This document shows positions 1-53,545 of a stretch of DNA of 64,000 nt, piece after piece. Under the pieces are notes generated by a model. The model was not told where the DNA came from, did not search any database, and saw only the letters and a list, made by a program, of their open reading frames with translations. Every line of letters begins with the position of its first letter. Positions within the stretch are counted from its first letter, which is position 1. The stretch is from Octopus sinensis. Lineage: Eukaryota. The stretch lies in assembly GCF_006345805.1 (NCBI RefSeq), contig NC_043002.1, positions 36,394,001 to 36,458,000 on the forward strand, written 5' to 3'. The position numbers and the translations under genes were made by a program.

Positions 1-1444
1 TCTTTATAATTTTTGCTTGAATTTATTTCTTATCCTCTTAAAAATGTCTGCTTCAGTATGAAAGTATACTTTTTTTCTTTTTTTTTTAGCTTGAAAATGA
101 CGTCAGCTCATGTATTTGACAAAACATTTGTGTCATTTAATGAAAATATCCTTGGACTTTGGGACCTGTTCTCTGGTTATTTAATGGCATCTATTTATTG
201 TTCTAATATTTCTAGCGTCACAGTTTTCCATTCTGTCAATCAATTATGGCTTATAACAAGTCAGAAAGGAGGATGCATACACTGGTATAGCTCATAGCAC
301 ACTTTGACAATGTTTTAAGACATAAGTGTCTGGTATATGATATTGCAAACTTTCTTTCTTTATCAAGAAAGAAAGGAACTCACCATTACAATTTCTCCTG
401 AATTTCAGTTCTGTATATATAAAATCATTTATTTATAGAGATATATGTAAGTGAAAGTGGAGGAGAAAGAACAGAGGATGAAATATAACAGCAATGCAAT
501 GTTAGTTTCACCTCCTCCTAGAACAGTTTTTGTTTTTGTTTTAGTGTCATGAAATTTTAGTTTTCTAATGAACTTATCTTCAGTAGTTCCAGTACAATTA
601 AATAAAACTTTAATATTATGATCACTAAGAAAGATTCAAATATTTGGTAATTATTTCAAACTGTTAAGGAACCATTAAAAAAAACAAAACAATTTTGTTG
701 TATAGATTCAGGTTATATTTTGATTGAGCGGTCTTATGATGAATGATATTCCAGCCATCATAAGTTTTTTTTTTTTTTTTTGGTATATCATGGACTTGTC
801 CAATGATTTAAAAAAAAAAAAATTTTTTTTTTAATTCTTTGAAATGATTGGGTGGAAATTTGGGTGTTATTTCTAGCAGGTTGAGCATCTTCATAGGGAT
901 GGCCTGTGGAGTTTTGTTTTGTTGTGTCTTTAGCAAGATATAACCCTACTTGACTCAGTCTGCTGGCCTGATATATTCTCTTAGACTGGGTGTTTTGAGG
1001 TAGAAAAAAGCAGTCAGTTGCTCCAATTTGTAAATCAGTAGGGGAGGGAAAGAATGATCAGTAGAAGGTGCAGAGAGATAGTGCCAATGAGATGTCCCAG
1101 TAGCCCCTTAAGGTATGAGGTGAGAAGTGGATGGGGTGATTTGCGAGATTGTATGGGGAAGAGGAAGGGATGGGAGGTATCTTACAATTATTTATTTCTT
1201 TATTACCCACAAGGGGCCAACATAGAGGGGGACAGTACAACATGATTGGAGTCATGTTAAAATGATGATGTAAAACATTAAATGATGGTAAAAATACAAT
1301 GAAATTACAATTAAATCGAAAATCGAATGTTACACATTTGACAAAATAACACAAAAAGGACGCATGAAGCAGAAAAAAACAGGATTGCCGACTCCACGAG
1401 CCGTTTTTCCCCACTGAAACCTTGGTAGTTGACTTATGGCATGT

Positions 1445-4400
1445 TCATGCAGTGACTTTCACTCCCAGCAATCGTGCAACACACTTCCATCTTTTTTGAA
1501 ACTTGCATACTGACAGACACCTTTTCTCTAACTCAACCTTTCTTTTTAGGTGGAACTTAAAGAAGTTCACCAAGGCGAGGCCAGAGATCATGGTGTCTGT
1601 CATTATACCTTTCGTTCTGGTCTTCCATATAATCTCTTTCGCGACTGCTACTATGACGAGAAAGCAATGCTTACCTTCATTTGTCAAGAAACTAGGCGAG
1701 TCAATTTTTAGAATTGTCTCAGCCGATAGCTGTACTCTTCCGTCCGACAACAGGTGTTCTGCATAAACCCACACGTCCGAAATTTCCGGGCACTGAACAA
1801 TAGCGTGCGGGACTGTTTCTGCATCCCGCTCGCATCTTGGACAGTTCGATGGTCCATCGTGACCATGTCTTGTGAGCTTATCCCGAACGGGTAAGGCTCC
1901 TCTGTAACATTGCCAGGCCAAAGACTTCTGAAAGTTATCCAGTGTCCTCGGTCCGAATGTCCTTTGGAACAGGCTGTCTAACTGATTATTATCGAGACCC
2001 AAAGTCCTTCCCAGGGCATCGTCATTTCCGGCCTCTACCAACCTACTACAAAGGCTGCGGTGGTACCAAAGCCACCGGCATTGCCCGACTTGCGGAGGTG
2101 GAAGAGGGCCTTACGGCACTCTGAATACCACATGCTCGACCTATGTCTGCGACGATACCAGGTTTCTCTACCACCAAAACTGGCAAAGCTGGGGAACATC
2201 TGCCTCGCAAGCGGGGACCACACCCGTTCACCATCCAGGTAGAGCCAAAGATGCCTCAATCTCGGCGCATGTCTGCGCATCAACAGCCAAGGCATCCCTA
2301 GCCCACCCTTTAACAGCTTCTGACAGCAAATAGAACGTCTCACAAGAGGAGGGTTACCCTTCCACAAAAAGTGAAAGATTTGCCTCTCCAAGTTGCTTAA
2401 CCACGAATCCGGACAAGGAACGACGGTTAGGCGGTAAGTGATGACTGATGCTATAAACACATTGGCCACCTCTGCCCTCCTTTCAAGGATAGCCACCGCC
2501 AAGACCAAGTCTTGACCGCGTGGGCCACCTTGCTCGTCACCTCCGACCAGTTCTTTTCTATCTGGAGATCTGGACCAAACCAGATCCCTAGCAATTTAAC
2601 CGGGCCCTCCGTCCAGCATCCCATGATGCTATTCGAAGGCATCGATATGCCCCTCCAGGTGCCGAGTTGCAAGCCGACTGACTTTTCCCGATTAACTTTT
2701 GCTCCTGTCACCGTCTCGTAAGCCTTGATGGTATCTCCCACATTCTGTAGGAGTTCCACCTTGGTCACGATGATGGTGATGTCGTCCGCATACGCTGTAA
2801 CAGATCCTCCACCTCCTGGATTCGTCGGGATGGTGCTCAGCTTTTGCAGTAATGGCTCGAGAGCTATCACATATAAAAGCGGGGAGAGCGGACACCCTTG
2901 ACGAGCTGACCGTTTGATGCGGAACGGCTTCGAAAGGAAGCCATTCACCCGAACGATTGAGTCGATGTTGTCGTACAACTGTATAATAATAATGTTCGTC
3001 CTTCGGGTTCGAAGATGACCATTGACATCATTTGGTGGAATTGCTGCTATGAGACGGAGGTGGCTGGTGAGGCCTATCCGGGCAAGAAAGCCCCTCCCAC
3101 AGGTGGCACAGAAGTGGGTAGGGGCTGTGCTATTGGTGCAGGTGGCTCTGGCTTTCCGCATCTGGCGTTTCTGTTCGGCTGACTGAATCCGTCTCTCCTC
3201 GGCTGTCTTTGCTCCTGTGGTGATTGCGCTGCGCCAGGATGAGCGGTCGGCAGCAAGTGTCTCCCAAGGCTCTGTGCCGATGGAGAAGTCATTGAGAGAG
3301 ACTTTGAAACTGTCCTTGAAGCGCTTCTTCTGCCCTCCGACTTTGCGTTTGTCCTGGCTGAGTTCACCGTAGAAGAGCTGTTTTGGGATGCGAGTGTCGG
3401 ACATGTAGGAGACGTGGCCTGCCCATCTCAGCTGGGCCTTGCGCATGATCGTGATGGTGCTAGGGAGATCTGCCTGCTTCAGAACTTCCGTGTCTGGGAC
3501 TTTGTCCTGCCAGCGGATGTGAAGGAGGTTCCGAAGACACCTGAGGTGGAAGTGGTTTATCTGGCGCTCGTGCCTTCGGTAAGCAGTCCACGTCTCGCAG
3601 CCGTATAGTAGGGTGGTAAGCACGACTGCCCGGTAGACTTTCAGCTTGGTGTTGAGGCTGATTCCTCTCTGCTCCCAGACTTTCTTTCACAGTCTCCCAA
3701 ACATGCTGCTTGCCTTGGAGATTCTGTTGATGATTTCAGCATCTATGTTGGCATTGCAGGAGAGAGTGCTGCCCAGGTAGGTGAAGTTTTCCACCGCTCG
3801 TAGGATCCATCCGTTCACCTTTATCTGAGGCTCATGGTATTGTTTGCCGGGGGCTGGCTGAAACATCACTTCGGTTTTCTTGACACTGATGGTGAGACCG
3901 AAGTTGTCACAGGCTGATGAGAACCTGTCCATCCTGTGCTGCATCTCCTGCTCATCGATTGCGTTAAGGGCGCAGTCGTCAGCAACGAGAAAGTATCTGA
4001 TGACTGTCTCCTTCACCTTTGTGACGGCCTGCAATCTTCTGGAGTTGAAAAATTTCCCGTCCGTCCTGTACTTGATGTCGATACCGGACTTGCAGTCCCT
4101 GAAGGCATTGGACAGCATTGCTGAGAACATGATGCTGAACAGTGTTGGGGCCAGGACACAGCCCTGCCTGACTCCGTTGGTCACCTGGAAGACTTCAGAT
4201 GAGTTGCCGTCTTCAAGGACTCTGGCTATCATTCCGTCGTGGAACTGGCGGACAATTGCAATAAATTTGCTGGGGCAACCAAATTTTCCCATGACCTTCC
4301 AGAGTCCCTCCCGACTGACTGTATCGAACAGCTCACCAGCCTGTTCCAGTCGATGTGGGACAGGGAATAACTCCCTCAAGATTTCCGGGATGCAACAATC

Positions 4401-6481
4401 GTCCACATTTATAAGCGGAAAGGAGATCGGCAGTCCTGCAACAACCACCGAGGAATCTCCCTCTTTTCCATAGCAGGCAAGATCCTGGCCCGAGTCCTGC
4501 TTGACTGCCTTCTGGAACACTTGGAGCAAGGCCTTCTCCCTGAGAGCCAGTGTGGCTTCCGCGCGGGTCGAGGGACCACTGACATGATATTCGCCGCCCG
4601 CCAGCTCCAGGAGAAATACATGGAGCAGCACCTTGACCTTTGTTGACCTCACCAGGGCTTTTGATACAACTGTATAATCCACCTGAGAAAACCAATGCCC
4701 AGACCGAACTGTGCAAGCACAGACACCAGGTACCGATGGTTCACCCTATCGAAAGCTTTACTCTGGTCTAAATGGACCAGTGCCCCACCTTTGCCAGAAT
4801 TGTTCCCGAACCCTTCTATGGTGTAGTGTATAAGGTGAAGATTATCCTGAATGGTCCTTCCGGGGACTGCACAAGTTTGTGTCTCCCCGTTTAGGCCATC
4901 TGCGACACACGTCAAGCTTTTCGCTAACACCTTGGTCAAAATCTTCACCTCTGCATTCAGCAGGGTGGTGGGCCTGAAGTTATCTATTGTAACCCCCTTG
5001 CTCGAGTCCTTCCTGATCAGCGTCACCACTCCCCGGCGCACAGATCTGGGAATGAACCCATTCTGCCGCCAGTACATACCCGAACAAGTCTGGCATACTT
5101 TTATATAGTTCGTAGGGCAAACCATCAATTCCCGGCACCTTACCTCTGCCGCAGTCGGCCATGGCTTCAGCTACCTCCTCAGGCGAGATTGACCCTTCAC
5201 AGCTCTCCGCGTCCTGCCCTGAGAGGCGCAGCAGCCCGGCGAGGAGGTCTGTAAGGTCCGTCCTCTCACCCGGCCCGCCGTCGCTCCCGAAAAGCCGGGC
5301 AAAGTGCTCCTGAAACGTCCGACACATCTCTGGTTCGGTTACCACATCGCCTTGTTCGTTCGTCACAGACTTGATTGTGGAATCGTTTCCATGTTGAGGT
5401 TCCACAATTTGTGCCCATCCGGCAGCCCTAATACCCTCACACCCCATTGCGCGGATTCTAGCTCTGACGATACAACCCATGTGTTTGGCTTCGAGGTGCT
5501 GGTTTAATTCCAGTCTTTTCAGCCTAACCTGGGCTCCATCGCCAGATCTCATGGCTTCCTCTAAGGCCTTAACTAACCCCATTTCTTTTCTACGCCCACT
5601 AGCTACAAGTCCTATGCTGTATCTAATGGACTCGTATTTAATGGCTCTCTTGAGGGCGTACCACCATTTGTTGTTAATAATGGAACCGGTTAACGCCCTC
5701 TGATTTAATAACTTAATCCGGCTTCTGAAATCCTCAATAGCCAAAAGGGACTTATTGAGTTTCCAGTAACCGGATCCCTTTCTACATAACTTATCTAGGT
5801 GCAGTTTGCCAGTGACCATCTTGTGATCACTGTAACTGACCGGGTGAAGCTGTGGACACTTAACTATGTCTTTATCTATTTTTCCAATAAGAATTCTATC
5901 TATATAGGACCTGACAGACCCGTCGCTATTTGACCACGTCCTCTGTGGAGCGTTCGGGAATTCAAGTCTGTAGGGATCTACCAGCTGAAAGCAACTAAGT
6001 AGATCCCGGAAGCCACTGTTTGGTTTCCTATCTTTAGAGCCAATGCTATCAACACACGCATTGACTATAGCGTTAAAGTCCCCTAGCATGACTATGGATT
6101 TTGACGTGCCAAGAAACTTCTCCAGGTCTTGAAAAAAATCAGTCTGATGCGAATTGGGTGCGTACACCGCCACCAGCCTGATGTCCTTGCCACAACTGAA
6201 CGTCAGATCTAAGACGACCAGCGTACTTTCTCAGTCAGAAAAAATTAACTTTTTCCCAGAAACTCGATTTCTTTTAAGCAGGACCCCCCCCCCCGCCGGC
6301 CAGGAGAAATAAATTTCTCGTAGCCATCCAGGAGCAAGAGTAGATCTCTTGGACCTTCCACTCGAGTCTCAGTAGCGACAACAACATCTAAATTCTGCGA
6401 CCTGATATCATTTAGGAAACGTCCCTGTTTCCAGTTTGATATCAGGCCGCGCACATTCAAACAACCTACATGAACTGCCAT
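1445..6481 (-). pseudogene. Tx1 copy A ORF2 (APE endonuclease, reverse transcriptase, zf-RVT), disrupted
   Basis: Motifs GCLNVRGL, ETR, GDFNA, SYIDRILI, SDH (EN); DQSKAFDRV, RQGCPLSPLLY, YADD (RT); CPRC..ETVPHAIVQC. Frameshifts and an RTE insertion at 2988-4664. Confidence 0.92.
2988..4664 (-). mobile_element. 5'-truncated RTE-clade LINE with inverted 5' segment (4326-4664)
   Basis: 14-bp TSD tacaactgtataat at 2974-2987 and 4665-4678; (ATT)n tail. RT motifs GVRQGCVLAPTLF and VADDCAL, C-terminal CATCGRGF. The plus strand of 4326-4664 encodes the preceding RT region (NHRGISL, ESQCGFRAGRGTTDMIF, FVDLTRAFD). Confidence 0.93.
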
Positions 6482-6488
6482 AATTCAC

Positions 6489-7868
6489 CTACCTTGTTTC
6501 ATCTGGGTCCGGAGGACGGGGGGAACCCATCCCTTCTGCTTCTTGGGCTCGTGGAATCGGCAAGTTGGTGTTATTACTGTCTGCGTCCTTTTTAGCATCC
6601 TCCGCACTCATTCTCGAGGGGCAGACATCATTTCTGAAGTCATTCACCAATAGATTGAACATCTTCTGCCCCATTCTGTAGCTTCTCCATTCGCCTGCCT
6701 CCTCTGTCTCCACTTCTTCTATGTGGTGCGTTTCTATCCTCCTCATGATTTCTCTGTTGGAAGATTTTATCGCTGCATACACTTGGTTGTCTTTCTCTGG
6801 CTTCTTCGCTTTTTTTTATCTCTCTCGTTTTTCCACTTTTTGTTTTCTCCGGGGAGGGATTTTTATGTTTTCTTTTTTTTGTTTGCATCCACCCCTCCCC
6901 TTCTTCGGGTATGGGTGCTATTATCGGGTGTACTACCGGGGTAGTAGACTCTTGCGTCTTTTTCCCTTCTTCCACCGGTTTACAGTTTTTCTTCAGGTGC
7001 CCCTTTTTTTCCACAGGCGAAGCTCCTGGGCTGTCGGCCCTCAACCATCACTGGTAGTCTGTTGTCATCAACTTCAATTATTTCACTTATTTCTTCAAGT
7101 GTGGCTGGTTCCGCCTGCAAAATAATTTTTACTTTTTGACCTTTCCATTTCTCCGTTTCTTCGACTGTGGCATCTCTTATTTCCAGCCTTTCTTCTAATC
7201 CCAAAGTGACTGCTGCCACTATCTTCTCCGGTTCGATCTCCGGAGGGATGTTTGCTACTGTTATTTTCGATATCCTGCCCATATAGACGGGCCAAAGTGT
7301 CACCGTTTCTGTTCTGAGCGGATTCATAGAGTGAAGTCTCGCTTCCTCCTCGGACATGAACCTCACCTCTACAGTTCCGTATCTCTTTCCTCTTGCGATA
7401 TACTTCACCTTGTCCCAGATGGGCTTGAGACGGTCTTCTACTTCTTTTTCTGCTGAGAACTCAATTCTCCTTTCCTTGTTTTTATACGTTTTGTAAATGA
7501 TAGTCTTCTTTTCAATGTCCTCTTGTATTTCCTTTGTCTGTTCGATTTTTGTTTCATACCCCTCCTTTTTCATGTCTTTTTTTAGCTCGTCCAGGTTTGA
7601 GAGCTCAATCTTCTCCTTTGTGCCTGCTGCCTCTGCAAAATTAAGTTGTTTTTTTGCCAGACTCGGCACGTCAATGTTCCTTCGAACGTGCAGCTTTTTT
7701 TTTTGTCACATTTTCCTTCTCTTCGTCAGAGTCCGAAAAAAGCGGTATGCCGATTATTTCCGGCTCTTCTTTTTCTGGGCTAACCATTTGGCTAGCCGTT
7801 CTTCGTGGGCTTTGGTTTACTCAGCTTGCCGTTTTCGCCTCACTTAGGTCTGCCGTCGGGCTTGCCAT
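6489..7868 (-). pseudogene. Tx1 copy A ORF1 (RRM-like region YIARGKRYGTVEVRF, degenerate zinc knuckle, basic tail), frameshifted
   Basis: ORF-track pieces 6980-7669, 6640-7044 and 6489-6782. ATG at 7866-7868. Homologous to the other ORF1 copies in the window. Confidence 0.85.
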
Positions 7869-8409
7869 AATTTGGCCTACCCTCACGTACAGTTCCTTTC
7901 AATAAAGGTAACAACAATAACGATCGACTGAGGGTCGATGCTCCTTCTATAAAGTAACGACACGCAGCAACAAGCGCCTCGCACAATTCAATCCCGTTAC
8001 GTCTCTTTCTACAATTTTTCACTTTCTTTCACTCTTCCGCTCAAAAAATATCAGCTCAGGTTGTATTACTCTAGCAGCGACAGTGACAACTTTATATAGG
8101 TAGCTTACAATTATTATAAAAAAAACAGGTGGACAGGCTGAAGATTGATGAGTCGAGGCAGATAAATGTAGGGTGGGGTGGGGAGAAATGACAGTAATGG
8201 TGTAGTTGAGTGGGAGAATAAGAGATAAGGTGGGGTATACTGCAGGAGCATTGGGGGAAGAGGTAGATGTAGTGCATGATGAGAGTAGTTTAGTTTAGTG
8301 GCAGTAGAGTGAATCAATGGAGAGTACAATATACACAGTGCGTCCAAAACTCAGTTTTACTGGGGTGGGCATATCTTTCTGAGAACTTCATGTCTGACAT
8401 CTCAGTCCT

Positions 8410-9899: not shown

Positions 9900-11690
9900 G
9901 TATCCTGGGCCCTGATCAATATAGTATAATAGCTGAATTTGTTTGGATGGCATCACATTTAAAACTCTTACTGGTATGACTTACTGAAGTTAGAATACAG
10001 TAGTTTCCACTGTCAGTCTTTTTGTGGGGTGTTATCTTTGTAGATACTGTTATCATGGGTTACAACTTGCCAGCCTTCTGGATACTGCACATTTGAAGGC
10101 AGCTTGTATAGCACTATCTTTGATTATTTCCTTGAACTCTCAATAGACACAATCTGGCCCTGCTGTCTTTTTTTGTATTGAGAGAGGAGGCTCTTTACAG
10201 AGCCTCTGAGACTGGAGGGAAGAAGGTAGCCTCAAATCAGAGGTCTGGCACTTGAATGCTTCTAACAAAATGTCAGCTGATGTTGAACTGGGTAATGGTT
10301 TTTACTTGCTCACTCTGAAAGATGTTGCAATACCCATGACTCTTATATGCCTTCCAAAATTGTAATATAGATCCCATTTTCTGTTTAAACTGTTGCAGGT
10401 CAGCATCTATGGGTGACACTTGAGCAGGTGGAGATAGTCCAGAGGGTTGATGTTCTGAAGAAAGGGCTTAATGGTTAATGTGGGGTTGGTGGGTGGATAC
10501 AACAAGGGTAACAAGAGAGACATCTGAGTAGTGGAAGTACAAGGCCAACTAGCTACAAGTAGCAGAAGCCATTATAGTGTACTGGCTCTGGATTTGGTCC
10601 AGGATGTCAGTATGTATAGCAGCTACTTCATCCCAGATATAAGAAGTACTCCATTGTGGGTCTCACTTAAGGCTTGGGGAACAGAAATATTGCTGGTCCT
10701 AAAGAGAAGGGTTAGTTTTGGGGTTGTGGTCTTAATTATGTATTTTTTCCCCCAAAGAAATCTTTAATGACAGTGAGGCCTGACGCTTGCAGTGACTGTG
10801 CGAGCTCTTATTGGAGTGCTGCTCGTGTTTAGAGGGGACTGTGGTGTAGTAATGTTTTCTTGATATGAGTAGTGCTTGAGATTTTGCTGCATGACTTCAC
10901 TGGAGGATGCTCTCAAGGTCTCTATTTATGGAATCGGTGAAAATTTGGTATGTGGTATCCATGTGTGTGTGTGTGACTGAGGAAGGAACAAAAGGTTGTA
11001 TCATCTGCATAAGAGTGGACATCGCTGGATGTGGTGGTGAATATGTAGAAGGAAGAGATTAGGGAACAAAACTGAACCCTGAAGAGTTCCAGAATTAAGA
11101 GTAGGGGAGAAAGAGCTCCATCAATATATGTTCCAGTGGTGTAATCTGATAGAAAGCTACTTGTCCAATAAGTTAAAGATGGGTGGAGACTGAAAATGTT
11201 TTTTTTTTTTAGATTTGAATACCAAATATGCTGCTAGCTTTGCTAATCTCAAGAGCAACATTGTCAGAATCCACTGATGTGTGATGTAAGAAAGTATTTT
11301 CTCCAGTGGATAAGGTTCTGCAAAAGCTAAACTCTGCAAAAGCTAAGGAGAGAGAGAGAGAAATTCAAGGTAATGGAAAACATTTTTAATAGCTGTCTCT
11401 ACTATCTTGCAGATGTTAGCTGAGTTGGTGTTTCCTTTCTTTAGAGTAGGACACACTGAAGTCTATTTCTAAATGCCTGGGCATATCCCCTTAGAGAGTA
11501 AGAGATGAGTTAGGTGATTATAGGGGCAAGTTCAAGGATGCATTGTTTATGTATAATGGAAGGGGCATTGTCAGTGATTTGTTTAAAGTAGTGGAAAGTA
11601 CTTCTGCACACGGCATGTGTTTAAACAGTGGGAAGGTTGTTAGATTGGTCATGGGTATGTAGAGTGGGCTGTGAGGGTAGGTGCTTTCTC
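9900..11690 (-). mobile_element. Old, degenerate Jockey/CR1/L2-type LINE RT region
   Basis: Manual translation: KQCILELAPII (~11510-11550), VALEISKA (~11240-11260), NSGTLQGSVLFPNLFLL and DVHSYADDT (~11000-11100). The 9900 boundary is approximate. Confidence 0.65.
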
Positions 11691-17770: not shown

Positions 17771-17914
<144 letters not shown>

Positions 17915-17954
17915 GTGATAACAATACTCAAAATATATAACAAACTGGAATTGT

Positions 17955-39269: not shown

Positions 39270-40140
39270 TTGTTTCTGTGCAGAAGGTCAGCATTTCCAT
39301 CAAGTCCTCTGGTATCCTAGTATGTTTCTTTAGAGAGGTGTCTGCAACTAGTTTGTCACAAATCACTAATGTTTCATCAGTTGAGACTTTGGTGAATAGT
39401 TATCACAGCTAGACTCACCATCTGGTTGGATCCCATGGCAATACCTTTGATCAACTCTGTGATGTGAGTGGACTTCTTCACACGTAATGCCAACTTACCA
39501 GCTAACAGATTGATTATATCTACAAGGAAATGGTTCAGTTGATGACACGTTGAGCCTTGATAGCTTGCTGTAGATCTTAATGGAATGCCATCCCTGTGAA
39601 TCTTAGGGAGACTGTACATGTGTGGAAGCTTACTGTAATGTTGGATCAGTTGTCTGTATTTCATTAGTGTGAAGTGATCCTTGTACTTGGCTAAGATCTG
39701 TGACAATAACAACAACTCTGTTTTCGGAGTTGGATCTTTCTCCACTTTGCTGTAGCTTCTATCTCTGATGAGGCTTGCCACTTTTTCAAAGTATCCAGAC
39801 ATGTCCATCACCACCGTAGCATTATCCTTGTCCAGTTGGAACATAATACTTGGAAGTATTCTGATGGTACTGTCACTCTGTAGGGTTTTGGTAACCAACT
39901 TTTCTTCCCCAGTGATGTTTGGTTTTGGTGGTTTGGCTTTCTCTGCTACCTGTCTCGCTTTCCACCTTAGTTCATCTCCCTGGGTCTTGAGCGTCCTTAT
40001 GGCTACCTCCTTGATGGGGGCTATCCTGTCTAAGTATGGAATGCACTTGGTAGTTGTTGCAAAGTTGAGACTGTTTAGAACCATTTCCTCAGAGTTATCC
40101 AGATGTTGACTGTGTAGCAATATCGTTTCCCTCATTGCTA
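39270..40140 (-). mobile_element. Penelope-like (Poseidon-type) RT fragment
   Basis: LNFA, DKDNATVVMD, Y.KVEKDPT, MYSLPKIHRDGIPLR, VKKS, then LFTKV.TDE..LTFC in the next frame. No GIY-YIG domain is seen. Confidence 0.85.
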
Positions 40141-40258
40141 TCTTTACTGTTTGAGAAGAGTATTAAGAATAATCTCGTTCGAGATTACAAACATCTTTGG
40201 CTAGTTTAACATTGTTATAAACACTAATCCGATTGGTTGACACGTGACGCGATTTGTC

Positions 40259-42784: not shown

Positions 42785-43560
42785 ATCAGGCTGATACATT
42801 TTGAAACATGAAATTCATCTCAATATATTTCAACAATTTGGAAATTTTATTCATCAAAGTAAGTACCATTACAATGAAGACTTTTGCTCATGAGTATCAA
42901 GGCACTTGAAAAAGTGGTAGTCAGGAGAAAAGTTTGGGGAATAATCTGGGTGGGGAAGGACTTCATAGCCAAGTTCCCTCATCTTATGGAGTGTCATTAG
43001 CAAAACATGTGGTCAAGCATTGTCCTGAAGAATGGTTGGCCCTCTTCTGTTGACCAGTCTAGGACAGAGTAGCAGTTTTTCGTTCATTTTGGCAATTTCA
43101 TGGCAATATGTTTCTGCAGTAATGTTTTTTTCGAGGTTTTAAGAAGTTATAATGGATGAGTGCAGCAGTACACCACCAAACAGTCACCATAACCTTCTTT
43201 TTGAAGAGCTCGAATTTAGGGAAGGTTTTCAGTGTTTCATTTTGGTCCAACCACTGTGAAGAACATTTTTTCATTATTGTACAGAATCCACTTTTCATTG
43301 CAAATTACAATATGGTTGAGAAATGGATCAGTCTGGTTACAGAGAAGAAGCGATGAGCAAATTTCATATCTGTGCATTTTCTGATTTTCATTCAAATTGT
43401 GTGGTACCAATCTGTCGAGCCTTTCTGATCACATGCAAATGGTTGTAGGGCAGTTTTCTGCCTAACTTGAAATTCTTTTGCCAGCTCCCGAGTGGTTTAA
43501 CGTGGATCTTTCTCAATGATGGTCTTTAATTGACCATCATTGATGACTGATGGGCATCGA
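42785..43560 (-). mobile_element. Degenerate mariner transposase fragment
   Basis: KCSSQWLD..KTFPK..KKVMVTVWW..LIHYNFLKP; LQDNA near 43010-43030. Confidence 0.75.
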
Positions 43561-43574: not shown

Positions 43575-44610
43575 TTCAAGGCTCTGCTAATGACACTCCA
43601 GTTGCTGCTTTTTCAGGTTTGCACTCTGCACTAATGTGGCCTTTTTGACCACACTTGTAGCAATGAAGCATCCTCCCCTCAACTGTGACTTGCAGCTTAG
43701 TCTCCCCCACCTGGATACTTTCTATCATATTTTCTAAATCAGCCAGGGCAGCCTGTGTAATTATTTCGAGGCCCTGCCCCTGCTAATTCTTCAGTCCAAG
43801 CACTGAGGCTTGGGGAATTGTGATCTTATCCTCCAAGCCATTTATTATGGCTTCCACCAGCCAAGCAAGATCTACTTTGGGTTTGGATGTCTCCTACCTT
43901 AATCTTGGAATTCCATCTGCCAAGATAAATAGGTAGGAGTACCACCTCCTGTGTTTTTAATGATGCTATCTATGCTTCTTTTGCCTTTTCCTCGGTTTTG
44001 AATTGGACTTCTATTATAGCATACTTCACTCCTCTTGCGATGTATGTCACGTCATTCCAAACTGAACAGAGGCACAGCTCCACTGCCTCTTGCGTTATCC
44101 ATTTTTTTTTTTTGCTTTGGTCACAAATGATTTATATATCATGGTGCACCGCAGTGCATTCTGCATCATTTCACTGGGAGGGGTAATCACTGTTTCACTC
44201 CCCATCCTTTTTCATCATATCTTTGTATTTTCTAAGCTCATCGCCTCTGCAATTTGTCTTTTTTTGTGACACCAGCTGCTGCTGCAAAATTGCTAGCCTT
44301 TCTTCCTTGCATAAACTCTAATCCTGTCAGCATGCCTTCTCTGCTTCTGATATCTTCACTTGTACCAGGTTCACTACTGGTCTTGGTTTTAATAGGTGAT
44401 TTGTTTTACTTTGGAAAATACAACATTTTCCCCCTTCGCACAAGGGGGAAAACGCTACCTATACTGCTTGTGGCAGACTTTTGTTGTTTAAAAAACACTC
44501 AACAAAAGTTCAACAACATAATAAATCAACAGTGCAAATTCAACAAACAGAAATATTACAATTTATGTCAAACCTTTCAAACAACACACAAAAAAAATTA
44601 CGATCAACTT
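43575..44610 (-). mobile_element. Tx1 copy F: 5'UTR and ORF1 fragment
   Basis: SNFAAAAG at 44271-44294; VEGRMLHCYKCGQKGHISAEC at ~43620-43685; 5'UTR hairpin at 44426-44452. Confidence 0.8.
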
Positions 44611-45572
44611 AGAGGTGATTGTAACAATTTCTTTGTTGCTTATAAAAGATGAACATAGAGGGGGACGAACATGGACACCACAACACATAATGTTTGTTAT
44701 AATTAAATTGTGATTAAAAATTCATAAAAATATGAAAAATTCAAAAAAACATGAAAAATTGAAAAATCAGAAAAAACTGAGATGAATATATAAAATTGAT
44801 GAAATTGGACAAATAAATATGGGGTTCTAATCAACCCACCAGTTGTTTCCCCCCACTTTGTTTTTCCTTTTTTTCCTTCAGGACTGGCTATACCAGCTCG
44901 ATACCTTCCGCTCACATTATTCTTACTATAAGCGTCCATCTTTTTTGAAACATACCTTGAGACAGGAACTTCCTCTCCAGATGGATCTTACTCCGCAAAT
45001 GATAGTTAAAAAAACTAATCAACCGGCATCCAGAGATGAAGTTACCTGTCTCAGTTCCTCTTCTGCGCATCGTCCATACTGTGTCTTTCAGTATGGCCAC
45101 TATGCAGAAGAAACTTACCTTACGTTCCTTGTTAAAGGAGGAAGGTGGTAGAATATTTATGACAGACTCAGCCGACAGCTGTACTCTTTCTGTTTCCGAC
45201 ATCAGTTGTTCGACATAGGCTATCAGCCCCTTTAATTTCTCACAATACACAAAGGCATGCAGAACAGTTTCAGTGTTCTGCGTGCACCTTGGGCATGTAG
45301 GAGGGATGCCAAAACCATGCCATGACTGCTTCTCTTGAACTGGTAAAGCCCCTTGATAGATCAACCAAGCCAGGGATTTCTGGAAATTATCCAGGTACCC
45401 CAGCTCAAATGTCCTACCAAAGAGACTGGTTAATTGGTTTCCATCGTAGATTAGTTTCCCCTAGGATGTCATCAGACTTAGCCACTACTAAATCACTATA
45501 GAAGTCTGCAGTAGTAGCCTCGTTGCCAGTATTGCCTGCCTGAGAGAACAGCATAATTGCCCGTCTGCACTC

Positions 45573-48500
45573 GATTTCTTTATTACCTATAAAAGGCTAC
45601 ATAGAGGGGAGCAAAACAATCCCGAATGATTTTTACGATTATGATGCATTTTGGGATCAATAAAAATTTGGATGATAGTTATAAGGTTTCGAATGATAGT
45701 ACATATACATTGGACAATTTTACAAATGGAGTGGGGTGGGTCTACGGACCCCACAAACCCCGCCATGACACTTGGTCTTATGTTTTTCTTTTTTTTTTCT
45801 GTCCTATCTCGTATTTATGAGGGACCTTTTACTCACGACATTTTCCCACCTTTCATTGAACACTTTCTTACTCAGGCCCCTCCTCTCTAGTTCTATTTGT
45901 CTTTTCATGTGGAATTTAAAAAAGACCACCAGACTAGAACCAGAGATGAAGTCGCCTGTTATCCCTTTCATCCTTGTCTTCCATACTACCTGTTTCGCAG
46001 TTGAAACCACAGGAAGAAAACAATTCTTACCTTCTTTCGTTAAGAAATCCGGTGGGCTGATTTTTGCAATGGATTCAGCTGACAGCTGTACTCCTCCTCC
46101 ATCTGACAACAGCTGTTCGGCAAAAACCCACATATCTGCCACCTCCGAACACTGTACGATCGCGTGCAAGACGGTTTCCCTGTCTCGCCCACACCTCGGG
46201 CTGACTTGGCCTCCATGCCTTGCGAGTTTGTCCCGAACAGGTAAGGCACCTCGGTAACACTGCCAAGCCAAGGACTTCTGAAAATTATCCAGGGTCCTCT
46301 GCCCAAATGTACGAGGGGCGTTCAATAAGTAATGCCCCTGACCCACTTCCCATAGCAGTAGAGCAACGAAACATGGCACAGTTATTAGTCTTTTTCTACA
46401 TAGGAACCACCCAGAGTTACGCATTTCTACCATCGTTTGATACAGCTCTGGAGACCGTTTTTATAGAAGACCCCAGCTTGGTCCTCCAACCACAACGTGA
46501 CTTCAGAAATCAAGGCTGCATCATCTGGGAAACGCTTTCCTTTCAAAAACAACTTCACGGCTGGGAAGAGGTGAAAGTCTTTTGAAAAATTTTGACTCAT
46601 CTTCTTGGCACATCTCCAAATTTATCCTTGAGCACTCGACGCGTTCTTGCTTCTGGAAAGGTGTGAGCAACCTGGGAATCCATCTGGCAGACACCTTTTG
46701 CATATGCAAATGGTCATGAATGATAGTTTCCACAAACCCGGTACTAATCTTGACCTCATGGGCTATTTGGCGAATAGCTATGCGTCGATCTTCCAAAATG
46801 GCAGCCTCAACTTGATGGACAGATGCCTCATCAATGGCAGAAGGGGGGGGGGGGGGCGACCAGATCTGGGAGCTGTTTCCACTGAGTTCTGACCATATTT
46901 GAATTCATGATGCCAGCGTTTTACGAGGTCATATGATGGGGCATCATCACCACAAGTTACTTTCATTTCATCAAAAGTCTCCCGTGGTGTGCGTCCTTTC
47001 AAATACAAAAACCGGATCACTGCTCGACACTCAACAGGCTCCATTTCACACTTGACTCAGTTCAAACACCTGTAAATCAGAAACCACAATTAGTTCAGAA
47101 CTGTAATTTGCCACTTAATCTATAGAAATATAAATAATTGCCCATGCAAAATTTCAGCTGGATCAAACAACTGCAAGTGGGTCAGGGGCATTACTTATTG
47201 AACGTCCCTCGTATGTTGGAACAGACTGGCCAGCTGATTATCGTCGAAACCTAGAGTTTCCCCTAGTGTATCATCACAACCGGCCTCTACAAACCCTCTA
47301 TAGAAAACAGCGGTAGAACCACTGCCGCAGGCATTGCCCGAGCAACGGAATAGGCGGAGTGCCTTGCGACACTCCGTATACCAACTTCGATCTGCGATTA
47401 AACCAGTCTTCCCGTCCACCGAAACTGGTGAACTTGGGGAACATCTGTTTCGCCAGTGGAGACCACACCCGTTCACCATCCAGATGGAGCCACAGATGCC
47501 TTAGCCTCAGTGTATTTCTGCGCATAATTAGCCACGGCATCCCTAGTCCACTCTTTAACGGTTTTTGACAACAAATAGAGCGTCTCACAAGTGGTTTCGA
47601 GCTCTTCCACAAGAAGAGAAAGAGCTGTCTTGCCAACCTGGTCAACCACGAATCCGGGAAGGCGGTAGGTGATCACCGATGCGATAAACACATTGGCTAC
47701 CTCTGCCCTACCTTTCAGGGATAACCACCGACAAGACCAGGTCTTGACTATTGCGGCCACCCTGCTCGATACCTCGCTCCAGTTCTTCTCTATTTGGAGG
47801 TCTGGTCCAAACCAAACCCCAAGCAACTTAACCGGACCCTCCGTCCAACATCCCACGACGCTGTCTGGAGGCATCGACTTGCCTCTCCAGGTGCGGAGTT
47901 GCAAGCCAACTGATTTTTCGCGATTAACTTTTGCTCCTGTCACCGTCTCGTAAACCTCTATGGCCTTGCCTACTTTACGTAGGAGGTCCACTTCAGTCAC
48001 GATGATAGTGATGTCATCCGCGTACGCCGAAACCGACATCTCACGACCTGGCTGCCTCGGGATGCCACTCAGTTTTCGCAGCAGCAGCTCAAGAGCCACT
48101 ACATATAAAAGTGGGGAGAGTGGGCATCCCTGACGGACCGAGCATTTGACTTTAAACGGCTTAGAAAGAAAGCCGTTCACCCGAACTACCAAGTCGACGT
48201 TGTCGTACATTTTGATGATCCACCTGAGGACGCCAAGACCCAGGCCGAACTGAGCCAGAACGGACACCAGGTAATGATGGTCGACCCTATCGAAAGCTTT
48301 TGATTGGTCTAAATGGACCACTGCCCCTCCCTTGCCAGGATCGTTATTAATTCGTGGACTCTTAGCTAGGTTTCTATCTATCTTTCTAATTAGTATCCTG
48401 TCTATGTATGACTTGAGAGATCCGCCGCCGCTTGACCATGTCACAATAGAGCGTTTGGATGTTCCAGTCTATATGGATCTACCAGCTCAAAGCGTCTTAG

Positions 48501-49435
48501 TAGATCCAGGAAGCACGCATTTCCTTTCCTATCTGTACACGAGCCTCCACAGTCTACCCGCGCATCGCATACTGTGTTGAAGTCTCCTAACATTACTCAG
48601 AAACTTGCCGAGGTTCCGAAAATAATCACTTTGCCCTTTGTTTTCGTTGGGTGCGTAAATTGCAACCAGCCTGATTGTCTTACGACTACTGAACATCAAA
48701 TCAACGATGACCAGCCTACTTTCTGGATCTGAACTTTTTCTCAGAAACCCGGTTCTTTTTACACAGGGCCAACACCCCGCTTCCGCCGGACGACAGGTTC
48801 GAAGAGATAATTCCCTTGTAACCGTCGAACAGCGGGAGCAGATCTCTTGGCCCCTTTAACCGGGTTTCTGTGGCAACAATAATATCTAAATCTCGTGACC
48901 TGATGTCATTTAGGAGGCGCCCTTGCTTCCAGTTCGACATCAGGCCACGCACATTTATGCACCCTACACAAATACGGGACATTGCTTACCTTTTAACAAG
49001 TGTTCTTATATCCCTGTTGGTCGTGGGGGGGAAGTCCGCCTTAAAAAGTGACTCGTACAGGTCGAGTCGCGGACCCCTGACATCCCCCGAGTACTGCGCA
49101 CTTATGATGTTATAGTTCAATCTATCCATCTTGTAGACTTCCACGTTTTTGGGCAGTATTTTAAAGGTCTGCACTTTTTCGGCAGTTGGCATGTTTTCCA
49201 TTTCGCTCTTCAGTCTATCGTTTTCCTTGTTTATCGAGACAAAAACTGTCTGAAACTTGGTAATTTTTTTGGGCTTTGTGGGGGTGATGGGGAGTATGTT
49301 GGGGGAGAACACTGGGATAAGTTTGGGAGGGGAGGGTATTGCTCGGCACTGGGGGGTGGGAGTGGTTCAGGTTGGACTGGGGGGGGTCTTCTCTTTTTTA
49401 CCTTTTTGTGGGCAACCGTAGTTGGGTGGGGTAGG
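45573..49435 (-). mobile_element. Tx1 copy H (same subfamily as B), 5'-truncated in ORF1, nested in copy G
   Basis: 14-bp TSD gcc(c/t)gtctgcactc at 45559-45572 and 49436-49449. AATAAA tail; EN-to-RT internal deletion at ~48354. Confidence 0.9.
46312..47211 (-). mobile_element. Internally deleted mariner with intact TIRs, nested in copy H
   Basis: TA TSD at 46310-46311 and 47212-47213; ~33-bp TIRs cgaggggcgttcaataagtaatgcccctgaccc. HTH and WIPRLL linker present, catalytic core absent. Confidence 0.95.
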
Positions 49436-52400
49436 GCCTGTCTGCACTCTTTGTACGAATCACCCATTCTAGGTCTTTGCATGATCCATGGACCCAAGTC
49501 CCGCAGGGACTCCAATTGCAGAAAGAACTTGACCACACCCATTCATCATCCAGGTAAAGCCAAAGATGTCTCACCCTCAATGCATCCCTAACCCACCCTC
49601 TAACGGGTTTTGGCAGCAGATAGAGTGCCTCACAAGTGGTGGTCTCCCACTCCACAAAAAGCGGAATAGAAGCCGTCCAAACTTGTTCATCCACAAATTG
49701 GGGCAAAGCACGACGGTCAGGCAGTAGGTTATTACAGATGCAATAAACACCTGTACAACCCCTGCCCACCCTAGCAAGGATAATGTCCTTCCAAACCAGG
49801 CCTGGGTTAGGGCAGTCACCTTGCCTGTGACCTCACTCCAGTTTTTCTCTATCAGGAGGTCTGGATTGAAACAGACCCCGAGCAATTTAACAGGACCCTC
49901 TGTCCAGCGACTCACGGTACTGTTGGGAGGAGTTGGCTTGCCTCTCCAGGTGCTGAGCTGCAAACCAACTGATTTTTCTTGGTTAATTTTTGCACCTGCC
50001 ACCATCTCGTATCTTTCGATGGTGTCTTCTACCAAAGGTAGCTGCCCTTCGTCTGACATGATGATGGTGACATCGTCTGCACATGCCATCACGTCTCTTC
50101 CATAACACAGATCACGAGGATGGCCCTCAGTTGCCTCCAACCTCCACAGCAATGGCTCAAGAGCCAGTATGTACAGAAGTGGAGACAGGACAACCCTGTT
50201 GAACCGAACACTTGATTGCAAATGGCTCCGAGAAGAAACTATTCACCCAGACCACAGACTTGATGTTGCTATACATAGCACTGATCCAGCCACGAAAGGT
50301 AAGCTGCTGTGAGGACAGCCTCCAGATACCGATGGTCCATTCTATCGAATGCCTTAGACTGGTCCAAATTCACCAGTGCACCAGGAACTTTACTAACCCG
50401 ATCTAAGGTGTAGCGTATAAGATGAAGGTTATTGTGTATCGTCCTTCCTGGGATGGTACAGGTTTGCGCCTCCCCAATCAGGTCGCCCACCACAGCCAGT
50501 ATTTCCCTGAACAAGTCTGGCATACTTTTATAAAATTCGTAAGGCAAACCATCAAATCCTTGAGACCTATCCCCGGGGTCATTGAGGAAACAGGCCTGCT
50601 TCCACTTCGAATCTAGGCCATATACATTCAAACAGCCTATGCTAAGCGTAGCCTTTTCTCAAAAGGAAAAGAAACGGCTTACCTTTCCCAAGGTATATGC
50701 CTGAGGGTGACTGAGTTAACTTTGCCACTTTCTCCAGGCTTGGTTCATCCAGCGGGTTGATTATTTTTTGCAGTGACCCAAGCTCTGCAATGTCTTTTGG
50801 GTGTATCTTTTTCATGTCATTGTATAACTTCCTTGAGATTCTTCTGTAAGTGAGGACTCCTTCAACATCACTCTGGAAGATTCCTTATTGCATATTGGGC
50901 ACAATCACACCCACCAAATAAGTGTTGGTGTTTCTAAACACTACCATTACCGTTTCCGTTTTTTTTTCCCCACAGGTTTGATGGCCTGTACCAGGCCACC
51001 TCTTCAGTTGTTCCTTTACTTTCTATCAGTTTTTCAGCTGTGGTCCTTCTGGCTACCTTTATGATTTTCTTTTCCCTTTTTGGGAGGGGGTTTATTCTTT
51101 TCCGGTATTACTGCTTTTGGTCTTTTTCTTGAGACCACCTGGAACTCCATTTTGCCATCCTCTTCCTGGGCCGTCACCCCGTCACTGCTGGTGGTAGCCC
51201 CTTGGTTAATGGCCTCCTTGGCCTGGGCTACCACCTGCTCCTCACTGGTTACTTTTTTACTGGTGGTAGCCCTCTGGGTAATGGCCTCCTTGGCCGGGGC
51301 TATCACCTTCTCGTTGTTGGTCTTACTGTTGGTGGTAGCCCCCTAGGTAATGGCCTCCTTGGCTGGGGCTACCACTTTTGCCACTTTCTCGTTGGTGGGG
51401 AGAAGGAAGTTCTCCCCACCTTTCACCTTGGGAGGCCCACACACGGCCCTCTGGTGTCCCTTCCTTCTGCACCGGAAGCACCAAGGTTTTCTCCCTTCCA
51501 CATTTATGATTAAGGCTGACTTCTCTGCAATCTGTATTCTATCGGGGAGCTCTTCTAAGTCTGCAGGTGTAGCCTGTACCAGGATTTCCAAAGATTGTCC
51601 TTTCCAATTCTGGGAGACATCTTTTTATCTGGATTACCTCCAGTTTTTCTTCTCTATTGAAGAGGAGTATGACAACAACCCATGCTACCTCAACACCAGG
51701 AGGGATATTCATGATTTTTATCTGGGATGTCCTGCGTCCCAGATATAATGGTAATAGTGCCATTTTGTCATTCTGCAAGGTCCGAGCGGAATAATCCTCA
51801 GCCTTTCCAGCTGACTCGAACCCTGCTTCGACTGTTGCGTACTTGTTACCTCGGGTCAGGAAGGCAATATCCTTCATTACTGACCCGAGGCACTCCTCTA
51901 TCTTCCTCCTCAAACCGTCTCACTTTCTTTCTTTTTAAGCAGAACATTTTATATATTACAGTTCTTTCCCGTCTGCAGGTAGTTATTTCAGGGGGCGGGG
52001 AATTACTTTCCCTGTTGCTTTCAGTTATTTTGCCAAACAAAAGTTGTATTTCAGCCTTTTTCAAGGTAATGATTTCCTCTTGCTGACCAACGGCAGTGGC
52101 GTAATTAATAGGTGCCGGCGTGGCTACTGCTTCCGCAGTTGATGCCATAGTGGCACTCAAAATTTATCCGTTCCCTCTACAATGAGGTAAAAAAAATCAG
52201 TTTATACAAATCCTTCCCCCGTGGAGGAGGGTAACAACAATATTACAAGCCATTAATTAAAAACTCAACGGCTACAACAATAAAACAACAATGAATCCTG
52301 CAACAGGCAACAATTATTTAAACCCGCCTACAGATCTCTAAACGTTATTCAATACCCAGAAAAACAGATGATTGTTACAAAAGTGAAAAATGTCAATTTA

Positions 52401-53050: not shown

Positions 53051-53234
53051 CTCCTTCAGTCTAGTGTGGTCTTTGTTCCAGCCACAGATTTTGTAGGTTG
53101 TCCTGTAGGAACTTCCAGTTGTCTGCCATATTCTATGCCTGTATCACCTTCTTTTTGCTAAAAAAACTTTGACTAGAATGTTTCTAAATTTCTGACTGTG
53201 GTAGATCTTTGAGTTTCCATATCTTTCCTTTCCA

Positions 53235-53545
53235 GATGTAGAGGTTCTGGTTTTGTTTTTGGCACTTCTCTTGTATCTGCCGTGCTGCAAAGACCATATC
53301 AATTGTCCCACTGTTGTTCCTAAATTCACACTAGCTCTCTGAGACCATGTCATCCAGCAGGTGGTGTGTGATGCGGTTCATAAAAACACGGGCCATGATC
53401 TTTCCTGCAATGCTTAGCAATGAGATGCTTCTGTGGTTGTCGCATGAAGCTCTGTCCCCCCGTGTTCTTGTACAGATGCACGATGTTGGCATCTTGAAGT
53501 TCTGTGGCACTGACCCTTCATCCCAGAACTGCTGTATCTGCTCAG
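53235..53545 (-). mobile_element. RTE LINE RT fragment
   Basis: SCDNHRSISLLSIAGKIMARV..ESQC..TIDMVFAARQIQEKC; homologous to 4326-4664. Confidence 0.85.

Follow-up and report, generated by a model that had tools for sequence, protein, structure and literature searches.

Drosophila flamenco and flam-like clusters are dense arrays of truncated and nested transposable element (TE) remnants with nearly uniform orientation, which extend over tens of kb or more and are bordered by a protein-coding gene. What defines flam-like clusters is their content of antisense Gypsy/ERV remnants together with a promoter and strand-specific piRNAs (PMC10643416). Outside Drosophila, single-strand (unidirectional) piRNA loci of up to tens of kb, defined by small-RNA mapping, are reported for Aedes aegypti, as a flamenco-like locus (PMC7161354), and for the pearl oyster (PMC6342924). 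In human, intronic L1 elements show an antisense bias (62.1% vs 37.9%), which is partly made at insertion (PMC5717806). Moreover, both replicative and transcriptional strand asymmetries of L1 and Alu, as well as a preference of clustered Alus for direct orientation, are reported (PMC10030826).

The TE field analyzed here occupies about 52 kb of a window of 64,000 nucleotides (the whole stretch of DNA under analysis). It resembles the flam-like clusters in its dense, truncated, and nested remnants of one orientation next to a gene, but is devoid of LTR/Gypsy domains and consists of L1/Tx1-, CR1/L2-, and R2-like LINEs together with Tc1/mariner elements. As in human genic L1, the bias is mainly LINE-borne, whereas here no plus-strand host exon was found. 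On the other hand, the T-run asymmetry of its LINE DNA could favor direct orientation, as in TE nests and direct Alu clusters, although here elements that are not nested, and DNA transposons as well, take part in the skew. In contrast to the Aedes and oyster loci, this field is known from DNA orientation alone.

The neighboring, ABCC/MRP1-like gene is represented by its last three coding exons (59216-62604, minus strand; ABC_tran, exon reads), located at approximately 62604-62430, approximately 60640-60445, and 59335-59219, with a TGA stop codon at 59216-59218. The joined exons aligned over 98-100% of their length to MRP1 proteins at about 70% identity, and the best identity in the exon search did not exceed 87%. 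Identity of the joined exons was about 70-76% alike to annelid, mollusc, arthropod, and vertebrate MRP1, and this level among the best ABCC matches is the basis for regarding the animal lineage as poorly sampled. Given a minus-strand gene with a stop codon at this position, the TE field is intergenic DNA downstream of ABCC, and the TEs have the same strand as the gene. Thus, any plus-strand transcript would be convergent with ABCC, as the original prediction had assumed. Read-through from ABCC as the shaper of the field was rejected, because the TEs are sense to the gene, whereas the known effect of transcription goes the other way. The abrupt end previously placed near 53.6 kb is correct for the coding TE sequence (about 53,745), but ABCC coding sequence is reached only at 59,216, beyond a spacer of about 5.5 kb with 29-32% GC. 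The left limit of 1193 is the exact 3' end of a full-length LINE; therefore, the field may extend to the left of the window. The ORF and Pfam scan found no host exon in the field on either strand, in agreement with the earlier reading.

The Pfam scan took in every stop-to-stop ORF of 60 aa or longer from the two strands. Matches on the minus strand comprised RVT_1 at seven places, zf-RVT and Exo_endo_phos (three each), HTH_48 (Mos1), Transposase_1, HTH_Tnp_Tc3_2, and zf-CCHC, and those on the plus strand were only a weak N-terminal piece of RVT_1 (4371-4643) and a weak DUF4371 (28407-29219). A symmetric six-frame tblastn scan likewise confirmed that the coding TE pieces of the ABCC-adjacent field lie nearly all on the minus strand. 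By using the window TE proteins as tblastn queries on both strands, 22,430 bp of TE-coding bases were assigned to the minus strand and 1,932 bp to the plus strand (92% minus), and 380 repeat pairs inside the window had the same orientation vs 12 with opposite orientation. Self-comparison of the window gave 12,587 bp of direct vs 1,051 bp of inverted repeats at the DNA level. Once nested insertions, a tandem duplication, and a split element had been resolved, 15 tool-supported independent insertions were counted on the minus strand and two on the plus strand (two-sided binomial p = 0.0023), or 17:2 (p = 0.0007) if two minus-strand ORFs without tool support are included. Retroelements alone gave 11:1 (p = 0.006). 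The skew ranges from 88 to 92% on one strand, in a field with at least 17 insertions across 52 kb and 24 kb of recognizable TE coding sequence.

The concern that nested pieces are not independent, already voiced with the original prediction, was justified: de-nesting reduces the count to 15:2, and a realistic non-independent null yields about 1-3% per window. The window was chosen after inspection, and at this rate many such windows would arise by chance in a large genome. The orientation skew is real and modestly significant, in an ordinary TE nest. Most likely, this same-strand skew is without function. Ordinary insertion mechanics and chance account for it about as well as a piRNA-type transcript does, and the orientation count alone cannot tell whether the long plus-strand transcript deduced earlier (a piRNA precursor or an intron) exists. 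In favor of such a transcript, the 88-92% skew greatly exceeds the approximately 62:38 antisense bias of human intronic L1, and the DNA transposons share its direction (4:1).

Eight of the minus-strand insertions belong to a single L1/Tx1-like LINE lineage (LINE-A), which has an AP-endonuclease, an RT, a C-terminal zinc-binding domain, and an ORF1 with a CCHC knuckle (Exo_endo_phos, RVT_1, zf-RVT, zf-CCHC); in PDB, it is matched best by human L1 ORF2p (E = 3.6e-17, from copy A8). All copies of this lineage are on the minus strand. The full-length copy A1 (1193-8103; Exo_endo_phos, RVT_1, zf-RVT, TSD, 3' end motif) contains, in broken frames, ORF1 with the CCHC knuckle at 6983-7705, the AP-endonuclease, the RT, and the C-terminal zf-RVT, and is flanked by a 12-bp TSD, CTTACAATTATT (1181-1192 and 8104-8115). 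A2 (11624-13919; Exo_endo_phos, protein map) is cut on its 3' side and retains only ORF1 and, of the endonuclease, the N-terminal half, and A3 (18786-21669; Pfam, self-blastn, protein map) has ORF1, endonuclease, and the 3' end, its RT having been removed by an internal deletion (junction 19685/19670). A4 (16278-18452; tblastn E = 3e-16, TRF, 3' end alignment), composed of an ORF1 fragment (17958-18452), a (TA)69 microsatellite (17772-17909), and the LINE-A 3'-terminal motif at 16278, could represent either two fragments or a single copy with an internal deletion. Divergent LINE ORF1 fragments were found at 25806-26225 (A5; tblastn E = 1e-15 vs A1 ORF1) and, with a CCHC knuckle, at 43612-44122 (A6; zf-CCHC, tblastn E = 4e-23).

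The 5'-truncated L1/Tx1-like copy A8 (45574-49435; RVT_1 E = 3.8e-20, junction reads) sits in the same orientation within an old L1/Tx1-like copy, A9/7, with a 14-bp TSD, GAGTGCAGAC(A/G)GGC, at 45559-45572 and 49436-49449. It separates the 3' part A7 (44627-45572; zf-RVT) from the 5' part A9 (49436-52163; protein map and a weak RVT_1 below the Pfam cut-off), in which ORF1 and RT are present and the endonuclease is largely deleted; the reading frame of A9/7 runs on across the A8 insertion. An exact 9-mer search found no TSD for A3, A4, or A9/7. LINE-A as a site-specific element was rejected, as the 3' flanks differ between copies. A search with the LINE-A endonuclease ORF gave no match at E<=1e-20, a strict threshold that makes this weak evidence.

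Two CR1/L2-like pieces were also assigned to the minus strand. LINE-B1 (2978-4660; RVT_1 E = 2.6e-28) is nested in the RT of A1, ends in an (ATT)n tail, and is flanked by a 14-bp TSD, ATTATACAGTTGTA, read from its junctions against the uninterrupted copy A8. Its 3' part is on the minus strand and its 5' part (4344-4643), which contains the RVT_1 N-terminal piece, is inverted onto the plus strand; this looks like twin priming. LINE-B2 (53147-53745; tblastn E = 4.5e-27 vs LINE-B1), an N-terminal RT fragment, is the final coding TE piece ahead of the AT-rich spacer. TSDs thus document three TPRT events: A1 (12 bp), A8 in A9/7 (14 bp), and LINE-B1 in A1 (14 bp). These clean TSDs indicate real, separate events without segmental copying. 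In both LINE-in-LINE nestings the orientation equals that of the host; further nesting cases are a mariner in A8 and a hAT in an R2-like element.

The R2-like LINE Ra (26915-31800, minus strand; R2 proteins in PDB E = 8.6e-45, RVT_1) is split by this hAT into the RT with the C-terminal region (26915-28512) and the N-terminal zinc-finger region (30010-31800), where a weak C2H2 match was found in Pfam. Judged by its R2-type RT and these putative N-terminal zinc fingers, Ra fits the R2 clade. No 28S target site was recognized at Ra: Rfam matched no rRNA anywhere in the window, and a 28S target motif was not found. The Rfam and tRNA scans were empty, which rules out rDNA beside the R2-like element and tRNA-derived SINEs. 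The hAT (28513-30190, plus strand; DUF4371, Dimer_Tnp_hAT, Ra-Rb comparison) is internally deleted, and its domains, DUF4371 (E = 0.003) and Dimer_Tnp_hAT (E = 0.026), both below the Pfam cut-off, follow the correct order on the plus strand. It accounts for one of two insertions on the plus strand and interrupts Ra relative to Rb, a tandem duplicate of the R2-like 5' part (32355-35699, minus strand; self-blastn). The other is an N-terminal remnant of an R2-like RT (35576-35893, plus strand; tblastn E = 7e-17), which has a duplicate at 32518-32646 within the tandem unit. The original prediction had listed only the hAT and the R2 remnant on the plus strand, but this duplicate and the inverted 5' part of LINE-B1 are two further plus-coding pieces.

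The tandem matches of Rb (30204-32349 vs 32692-34830, 88% identity; 32355-32650 vs 35405-35699, 93%) define a unit of about 2.49 kb, and Rb was not counted as an independent insertion. This true tandem duplication is the one observation that would favor multiplication of a single oriented block, whether by segmental or tandem duplication or through an artifact of assembly. Such an origin is barely credible for the field, as the other copies are only 67-84% identical, lack flanking homology, and have their own TSDs; segmental duplication explains common orientation nowhere but in the R2 5' tandem repeat. With this sole exception, the level of DNA identity and the unrelated flanks of the copies point to old, separate insertions.

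Among the DNA transposons, minus-strand pieces include a Tc1-like transposase fragment (22229-23151; HTH_Tnp_Tc3_2 E = 3.3e-12), the C-terminal half of a mariner transposase (23710-24495; PDB Mos1 transposase E = 9e-5, extent by tblastn), and a middle fragment of another (43101-43428; Transposase_1 E = 8.4e-11). The fourth is an internally deleted mariner nested in A8 (46310-47213; HTH_48 E = 1.8e-6, A8 protein map interrupted), with 51-nt inverted repeat arms that are 88% complementary and include the terminal inverted repeats. The predicted minus-strand lean of this class was upheld, but recounting gave four of five insertions instead of five of six. This ratio of only 4:1 (p = 0.375), in elements that TPRT feedback cannot orient, was counted for an ordinary nest; the four minus-strand elements also lean as a strand-selective process predicts, which was counted against it.

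A foldback element (40259-41592) could not be assigned an orientation; its inverted arms (40259-40633 and 41231-41592), separated by about 600 bp, are 93.6% complementary over the whole arm and 97% in its two blocks without gaps. Two minus-strand candidates were left out of the supported count. One is a 261-aa open frame (39380-40162) without a Pfam or PDB match, which we take to be retroelement-like (Penelope-like) in appearance, and the other is a YADD-like ORF (10925-11233), also without Pfam or PDB support. The unannotated segments at 8.1-11.6, 13.9-17.9, 35.9-39.4, and 40.6-43.2 kb contain no repeat found elsewhere in the window and no Pfam domain. Ten ORFs of the window were absent from a collection of 15 billion proteins.

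That the field is an ordinary TE nest downstream of the minus-strand ABCC/MRP 3' end, built slowly by at least 17 separate insertions, is a tentative reading with somewhat less than an even chance of being right. Several processes may have contributed. Dominance of the single L1/Tx1-like lineage would by itself supply eight insertions. TPRT into existing LINE DNA would add to this, since the LINE sense strand is A-rich and the opposite strand offers about 2.8 times as many T-runs to nick, so that a new LINE would tend to match the orientation of its host and the bias would feed itself. Same-family neighbors in direct orientation may also survive better than inverted ones, with a presumed loss of inverted pairs, and chance may have played a part in a window picked for looking extreme.

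Composition is consistent with the feedback step. In LINE DNA, TTTT runs number 421 on the plus strand vs 151 on the minus strand (2.8x) and TTTTAA occurs 17 vs 6 times, while TTTT runs are symmetric in the non-TE flank of ABCC (214 and 233). Three primer ends were mapped from junctions; two are AT-rich (...CAATTATT-3' and ...TGTATAAT-3') and that of A8 (...CTGCACTC-3') is not. A preference of the endonuclease for T-rich or AT-rich sites is an inferred step; if real, it would favor the minus orientation in further LINE insertions, and the probability of such a skew by chance would then rise to about 1-3% per window. In a simple feedback simulation at the observed T-run ratio, P(>=15/17 on one strand) increased from 0.002 to 0.009-0.03. 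Against an ordinary nest, feedback still yields such a skew in only about 1-3% of windows, and the oldest layers (A9/7, divergent ORF1 fragments, R2-like) are already all minus, although pure feedback would begin from random orientation.

The other main reading is a unistrand, flamenco-like piRNA cluster, in which a long plus-strand precursor convergent with ABCC would give rise to piRNAs antisense to TEs and selection would have kept insertions antisense to the precursor. It is rather unlikely on the evidence of the sequence. A dense, nested, multi-family array of at least 52 kb that stops near a protein-coding gene, with a bias that reaches the DNA transposons and every age layer, agrees with such a cluster, and unidirectional loci of up to tens of kb are reported outside Drosophila, in Aedes and pearl oyster. 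Gypsy/ERV, the class that carries the bias in flam-like clusters (PMC10643416), is however absent: the Pfam ORF scan found no integrase, protease, RNase H, gag, or env domains on either strand. In addition, a promoter is not seen; transcription of the plus strand would presumably begin to the left, outside the window. A LINE-based variant, in which L1/Tx1-like, CR1/L2-like, and R2-like elements plus Tc1/mariner replace Gypsy/ERV along a plus strand running toward the ABCC 3' end in a poorly sampled animal lineage, is similarly doubtful. If a plus-strand piRNA precursor did exist, the locus would be a LINE-based flamenco analogue outside arthropods and a handle on the origin of antisense TE arrays. 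If the skew is ordinary, which is slightly more likely, the window is a calibration case of a one-LINE-lineage nest reaching about 90% same-strand, in which counting pieces naively exaggerates their independence. In that case, strand bias by itself would be unfit for calling piRNA clusters.

The plus-strand AATAAA count (23 observed vs about 20 expected from base composition) gives no sign of poly(A)-signal purging, which speaks against both a piRNA precursor and a very long intron. The latter, or a non-coding unit of a plus-strand gene, in which sense LINEs were blocked by transcription-coupled repair at insertion or purged for their poly(A)/splice signals, is distinctly unlikely. It draws on the established antisense bias of intronic L1 (PMC5717806) and on the retroelement ratio of 11:1 against the putative transcript, but this ratio is far above 62:38 (P(>=11/12) = 0.027 at p = 0.62). 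Moreover, in place of a moderate bias (about 60:40) confined to carriers of poly(A)/splice signals, the DNA transposons were found to lean likewise. A plus-strand gene spanning the window, raised earlier as a possible source of the transcript, did not emerge: no plus-strand exon or non-TE domain was found in 1-59 kb, where short or poorly conserved exons could escape the ORF and Pfam scans, as would exons beyond the window. For such a gene, the room left for a terminal exon would be the spacer at 53.7-59.2 kb, ahead of the 3' end of ABCC or in overlap with it.

Replication of the whole 50 kb in one direction, with LINE endonuclease nicks favoring one template strand, is very improbable as the cause. 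The LINEs carry most of the bias, and replicative strand asymmetry of human L1 and SINEs is reported (PMC10030826), but the DNA transposons would be left unexplained. The size of the human effect is reportedly modest, which also weighs against replication direction. A transcription-type composition skew was considered and rejected, as the skew sits in LINE DNA, the transcribed part of ABCC is without skew, and the ABCC flank is symmetric. At 10-18 kb the GC skew is positive, apparently owing to low-complexity sequence, as judged from the ORF translations.

Both strands of the window were handled identically, with every stop-to-stop ORF of at least 60 aa scanned against Pfam (165 minus-strand ORFs, 17,726 aa; 169 plus-strand ORFs, 14,697 aa). 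Minus-strand matches included RVT_1 in seven places, zf-RVT and Exo_endo_phos in three each, a Mos1 HTH (HTH_48), a mariner DDE piece (Transposase_1), a Tc3-type HTH, and CCHC knuckles, and the only two plus-strand matches, both weak, were an N-terminal piece of RVT_1 (4371-4643) and DUF4371 (28407-29219). By tblastn with the window's own TE proteins, TE-coding coverage reached 22,430 bp on the minus strand versus 1,932 bp on the plus strand. All ORF-to-window matches divided into 380 in the same and 12 in the opposite orientation, and DNA-level repeats were direct over 12,587 bp and inverted over 1,051 bp. The minus-strand skew of the TE field (1193 to ~53745) claimed in the original prediction is real, and its counts and anatomy are corrected here.

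The field was resolved into insertion events by protein-coordinate mapping, 3'-end alignments, and junction reads. The dominant lineage, LINE-A, is L1/Tx1-like (best PDB match human L1 ORF2p, E=3.6e-17) and comprises an ORF1 with a CCHC knuckle, an AP endonuclease, RT, and zf-RVT. All eight of its insertions lie on the minus strand: A1 (1193-8103, full length, 12-bp TSD), A2 (11624-13919), A3 (18786-21669, RT deleted), A4 (17958-18452, perhaps reaching a 3'-end motif at 16278), A5 (25806-26225), A6 (43612-44122), the old split copy A9/7 (49436-52163 and 44627-45572), and A8 (45574-49435; 14-bp TSD GAGTGCAGAC(A/G)GGC), which was inserted in A9/7 and across which the A9/7 reading frame (..SYKECR|RAIML..) runs on. 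The fragments at 11624-13919, 17958-18452, 25806-26225, and 43612-44122 have lost the 3' part, and what is left is the 5' part (ORF1 alone or together with the beginning of the endonuclease), the reverse of the usual 5' truncation, which suggests later deletions or unresolved nesting. A LINE ORF1 fragment is followed immediately downstream by a (TA)69 microsatellite (17772-17909), and the A9 ORF1 is flanked on its ORF2 side by a 72-bp tandem repeat of 2.7 copies (51184-51375). No database protein matched the 416-aa LINE-A endonuclease/linker ORF (4983-6230, minus) at E<=1e-20, and ten other window ORFs were absent from an exact-sequence index; the TE families of the window appear to be without close representatives in public protein sets.

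Among the other LINEs, the CR1/L2-like LINE-B1 (2978-4660, minus) sits inside the A1 RT between the copies of a 14-bp TSD ATTATACAGTTGTA and carries a terminal (ATT)n tract. At its 5' end, 300 bp (4344-4643) are inverted onto the plus strand relative to the 3' part, a structure expected of twin priming, which accounts for the plus-strand RVT_1 match. A second fragment of this family, LINE-B2, occupies 53147-53745 on the minus strand. The minus-strand R2-like LINE (RT 26915-28512, N-terminal region 30010-31800; E=8.6e-45 to solved R2 proteins) is broken up by a plus-strand hAT (~28513-30190), in which DUF4371 and Dimer_Tnp_hAT follow in the right order, both below the Pfam cut-off. The 5' part of the R2-like LINE is tandemly duplicated (30204-32349 versus 32692-34830, 88%; whole unit ~2.49 kb, 88-93% identity), and the element and its duplicate were scored as one event. 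A plus-strand R2-like remnant lies at 35576-35893, and its copy at 32518-32646, inverted relative to the LINE, is part of the tandem unit. The R2-like LINE has no rDNA context, as neither an rRNA match nor the 28S target motif was found. The hAT and the R2 remnant, originally listed as the only plus-strand pieces, were both recovered as insertions, and the inverted 5' part of LINE-B1 must be added to that list. The remaining DNA transposons are all on the minus strand: a Tc1-like fragment (22229-23151), mariner fragments at 23710-24495 and 43101-43428, and a mariner nested in A8 (46310-47213) with 51-nt inverted repeat arms that include the terminal inverted repeats. Two minus-strand ORFs (10925-11233 and 39380-40162, the latter 261 aa) had no Pfam or PDB support and look, in our impression, retroelement-like. 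The 261-aa ORF adjoins a foldback (40259-41592) with arms of ~375 bp, 93.6% complementary overall and 97% in two ungapped blocks, and a spacer of ~600 bp.

The tool-supported insertions number 15 on the minus and 2 on the plus strand (two-sided binomial p=0.0023, as for all tests of this kind here), or 17:2 with the two unsupported ORFs (p=0.0007), although insertion events need not be independent. Retroelements alone give 11:1 (p=0.006) and LINE-A alone 8:0 (p=0.008). DNA transposons, which have no insertion polarity, also lean to the minus strand, at 4:1 (p=0.375) instead of the five of six originally counted. Segmental duplication does not explain the common orientation, because copies are only 67-84% identical, their flanks are unrelated, and three insertions have their own TSDs; duplication or artefact is accordingly considered very improbable. 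This and the other weights given to the readings are our subjective values, with a small share left to unnamed explanations.

Strand composition skew was concentrated in LINE DNA. In the LINE DNA of the field, T4 runs number 421 on the plus and 151 on the minus strand (2.8:1) and TTTTAA 17 and 6, whereas T4 runs in the non-TE flank at 53.5-64 kb are symmetric (214 versus 233). L1 nicks T-rich or AT-rich DNA. If the LINEs here behave likewise, copies landing in older LINE DNA would be biased to the orientation of their host. In both documented LINE-in-LINE nestings the inserted copy has the orientation of its host. Of only three LINE primer ends that were mapped, AT-rich sequence was seen at two but not at the third. 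In a simple urn-type simulation with the 2.8:1 ratio, the probability of at least 15 of 17 insertions on one strand rose from 0.002 to 0.009-0.03. An ordinary intergenic TE nest, its skew a product of chance, LINE mechanics, and the dominance of a single lineage, is given the largest weight, somewhat less than an even chance, its prior being high and its likelihood low (about 0.01-0.03). With a rate of 1-3% per window, equally skewed windows would be numerous in a large, TE-rich genome, and this one is reported because it looks extreme. A bias set by the direction of replication was considered quite improbable.

A strand-selective process is favored by the strength of the skew, which far exceeds the 62:38 ratio reported for antisense over sense L1 in human genes (PMC5717806); at p=0.62, at least 11 of 12 has a probability of 0.027, as against 0.44 at p=0.85. 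The 4:1 lean of DNA transposons also favors such a process. Outside Drosophila, piRNA source loci that are unidirectional and tens of kb long do exist (PMC6342924, PMC7161354). A unistrand piRNA cluster, with a high likelihood and a low prior, may be a candidate, albeit a doubtful one; it is specifically Gypsy elements that bear the strand bias of flam-like clusters in Drosophila (PMC10643416), whereas no LTR/Gypsy/ERV domains were found by Pfam on either strand of the field. A plus-strand intron or lncRNA, intermediate in both prior and likelihood, would seem unlikely. The plus-strand gene that the original prediction proposed to look for did not emerge, no plus-strand exon or non-TE domain being found in 1-59 kb among ORFs of at least 60 aa. 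Plus-strand poly(A) signals are not depleted in the field, since 23 AATAAA were seen against ~20 expected from base composition (minus strand, 39 against ~40). Judging by the ORF translations, low-complexity sequence appears to be the source of a positive GC skew at 10-18 kb, and the transcribed part of the neighboring ABCC gene had no transcription-type composition skew usable as a yardstick. The possible sequence-level checks lend no support to a plus-strand transcript. The locus belongs to known kinds of thing, being a TE nest and perhaps also a piRNA source with a strand bias.

A minus-strand ABCC/MRP1-like transporter gene reaches into the right end of the window with its final three coding exons (~62604-62430, ~60640-60445, and 59335-59219; stop codon TGA at 59216-59218). 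Once joined, the exons align with MRP1 proteins from many phyla at ~70% identity, with 98-100% of their length covered, which confirms the exon model. The TE field lies downstream of this gene, with its elements on the gene's own strand; ABCC read-through is thus excluded as the cause of the skew, since elements sense to the gene are opposite to the known transcription-linked bias. The spacer at ~53.75-59.2 kb (29-32% GC), with many minus-strand poly(A) hexamers and no coding TE matches, probably holds the ABCC 3' UTR and downstream flank. The field has 37-53% GC, and GC content alone outlines it, because TE bodies (47-53%) are far richer than the ABCC introns and spacer (29-33%). A ~310-bp direct repeat (82% identity), present just outside the field (53906-54210) and in an ABCC intron (63059-63367), has no detected tRNA-like part and looks like a SINE or MITE. 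Among 5.8 billion proteins, the closest to the ABCC exons are only ~70-76% identical and come from annelids, molluscs, arthropods, and vertebrates alike, indicating that the source lineage is poorly sampled.
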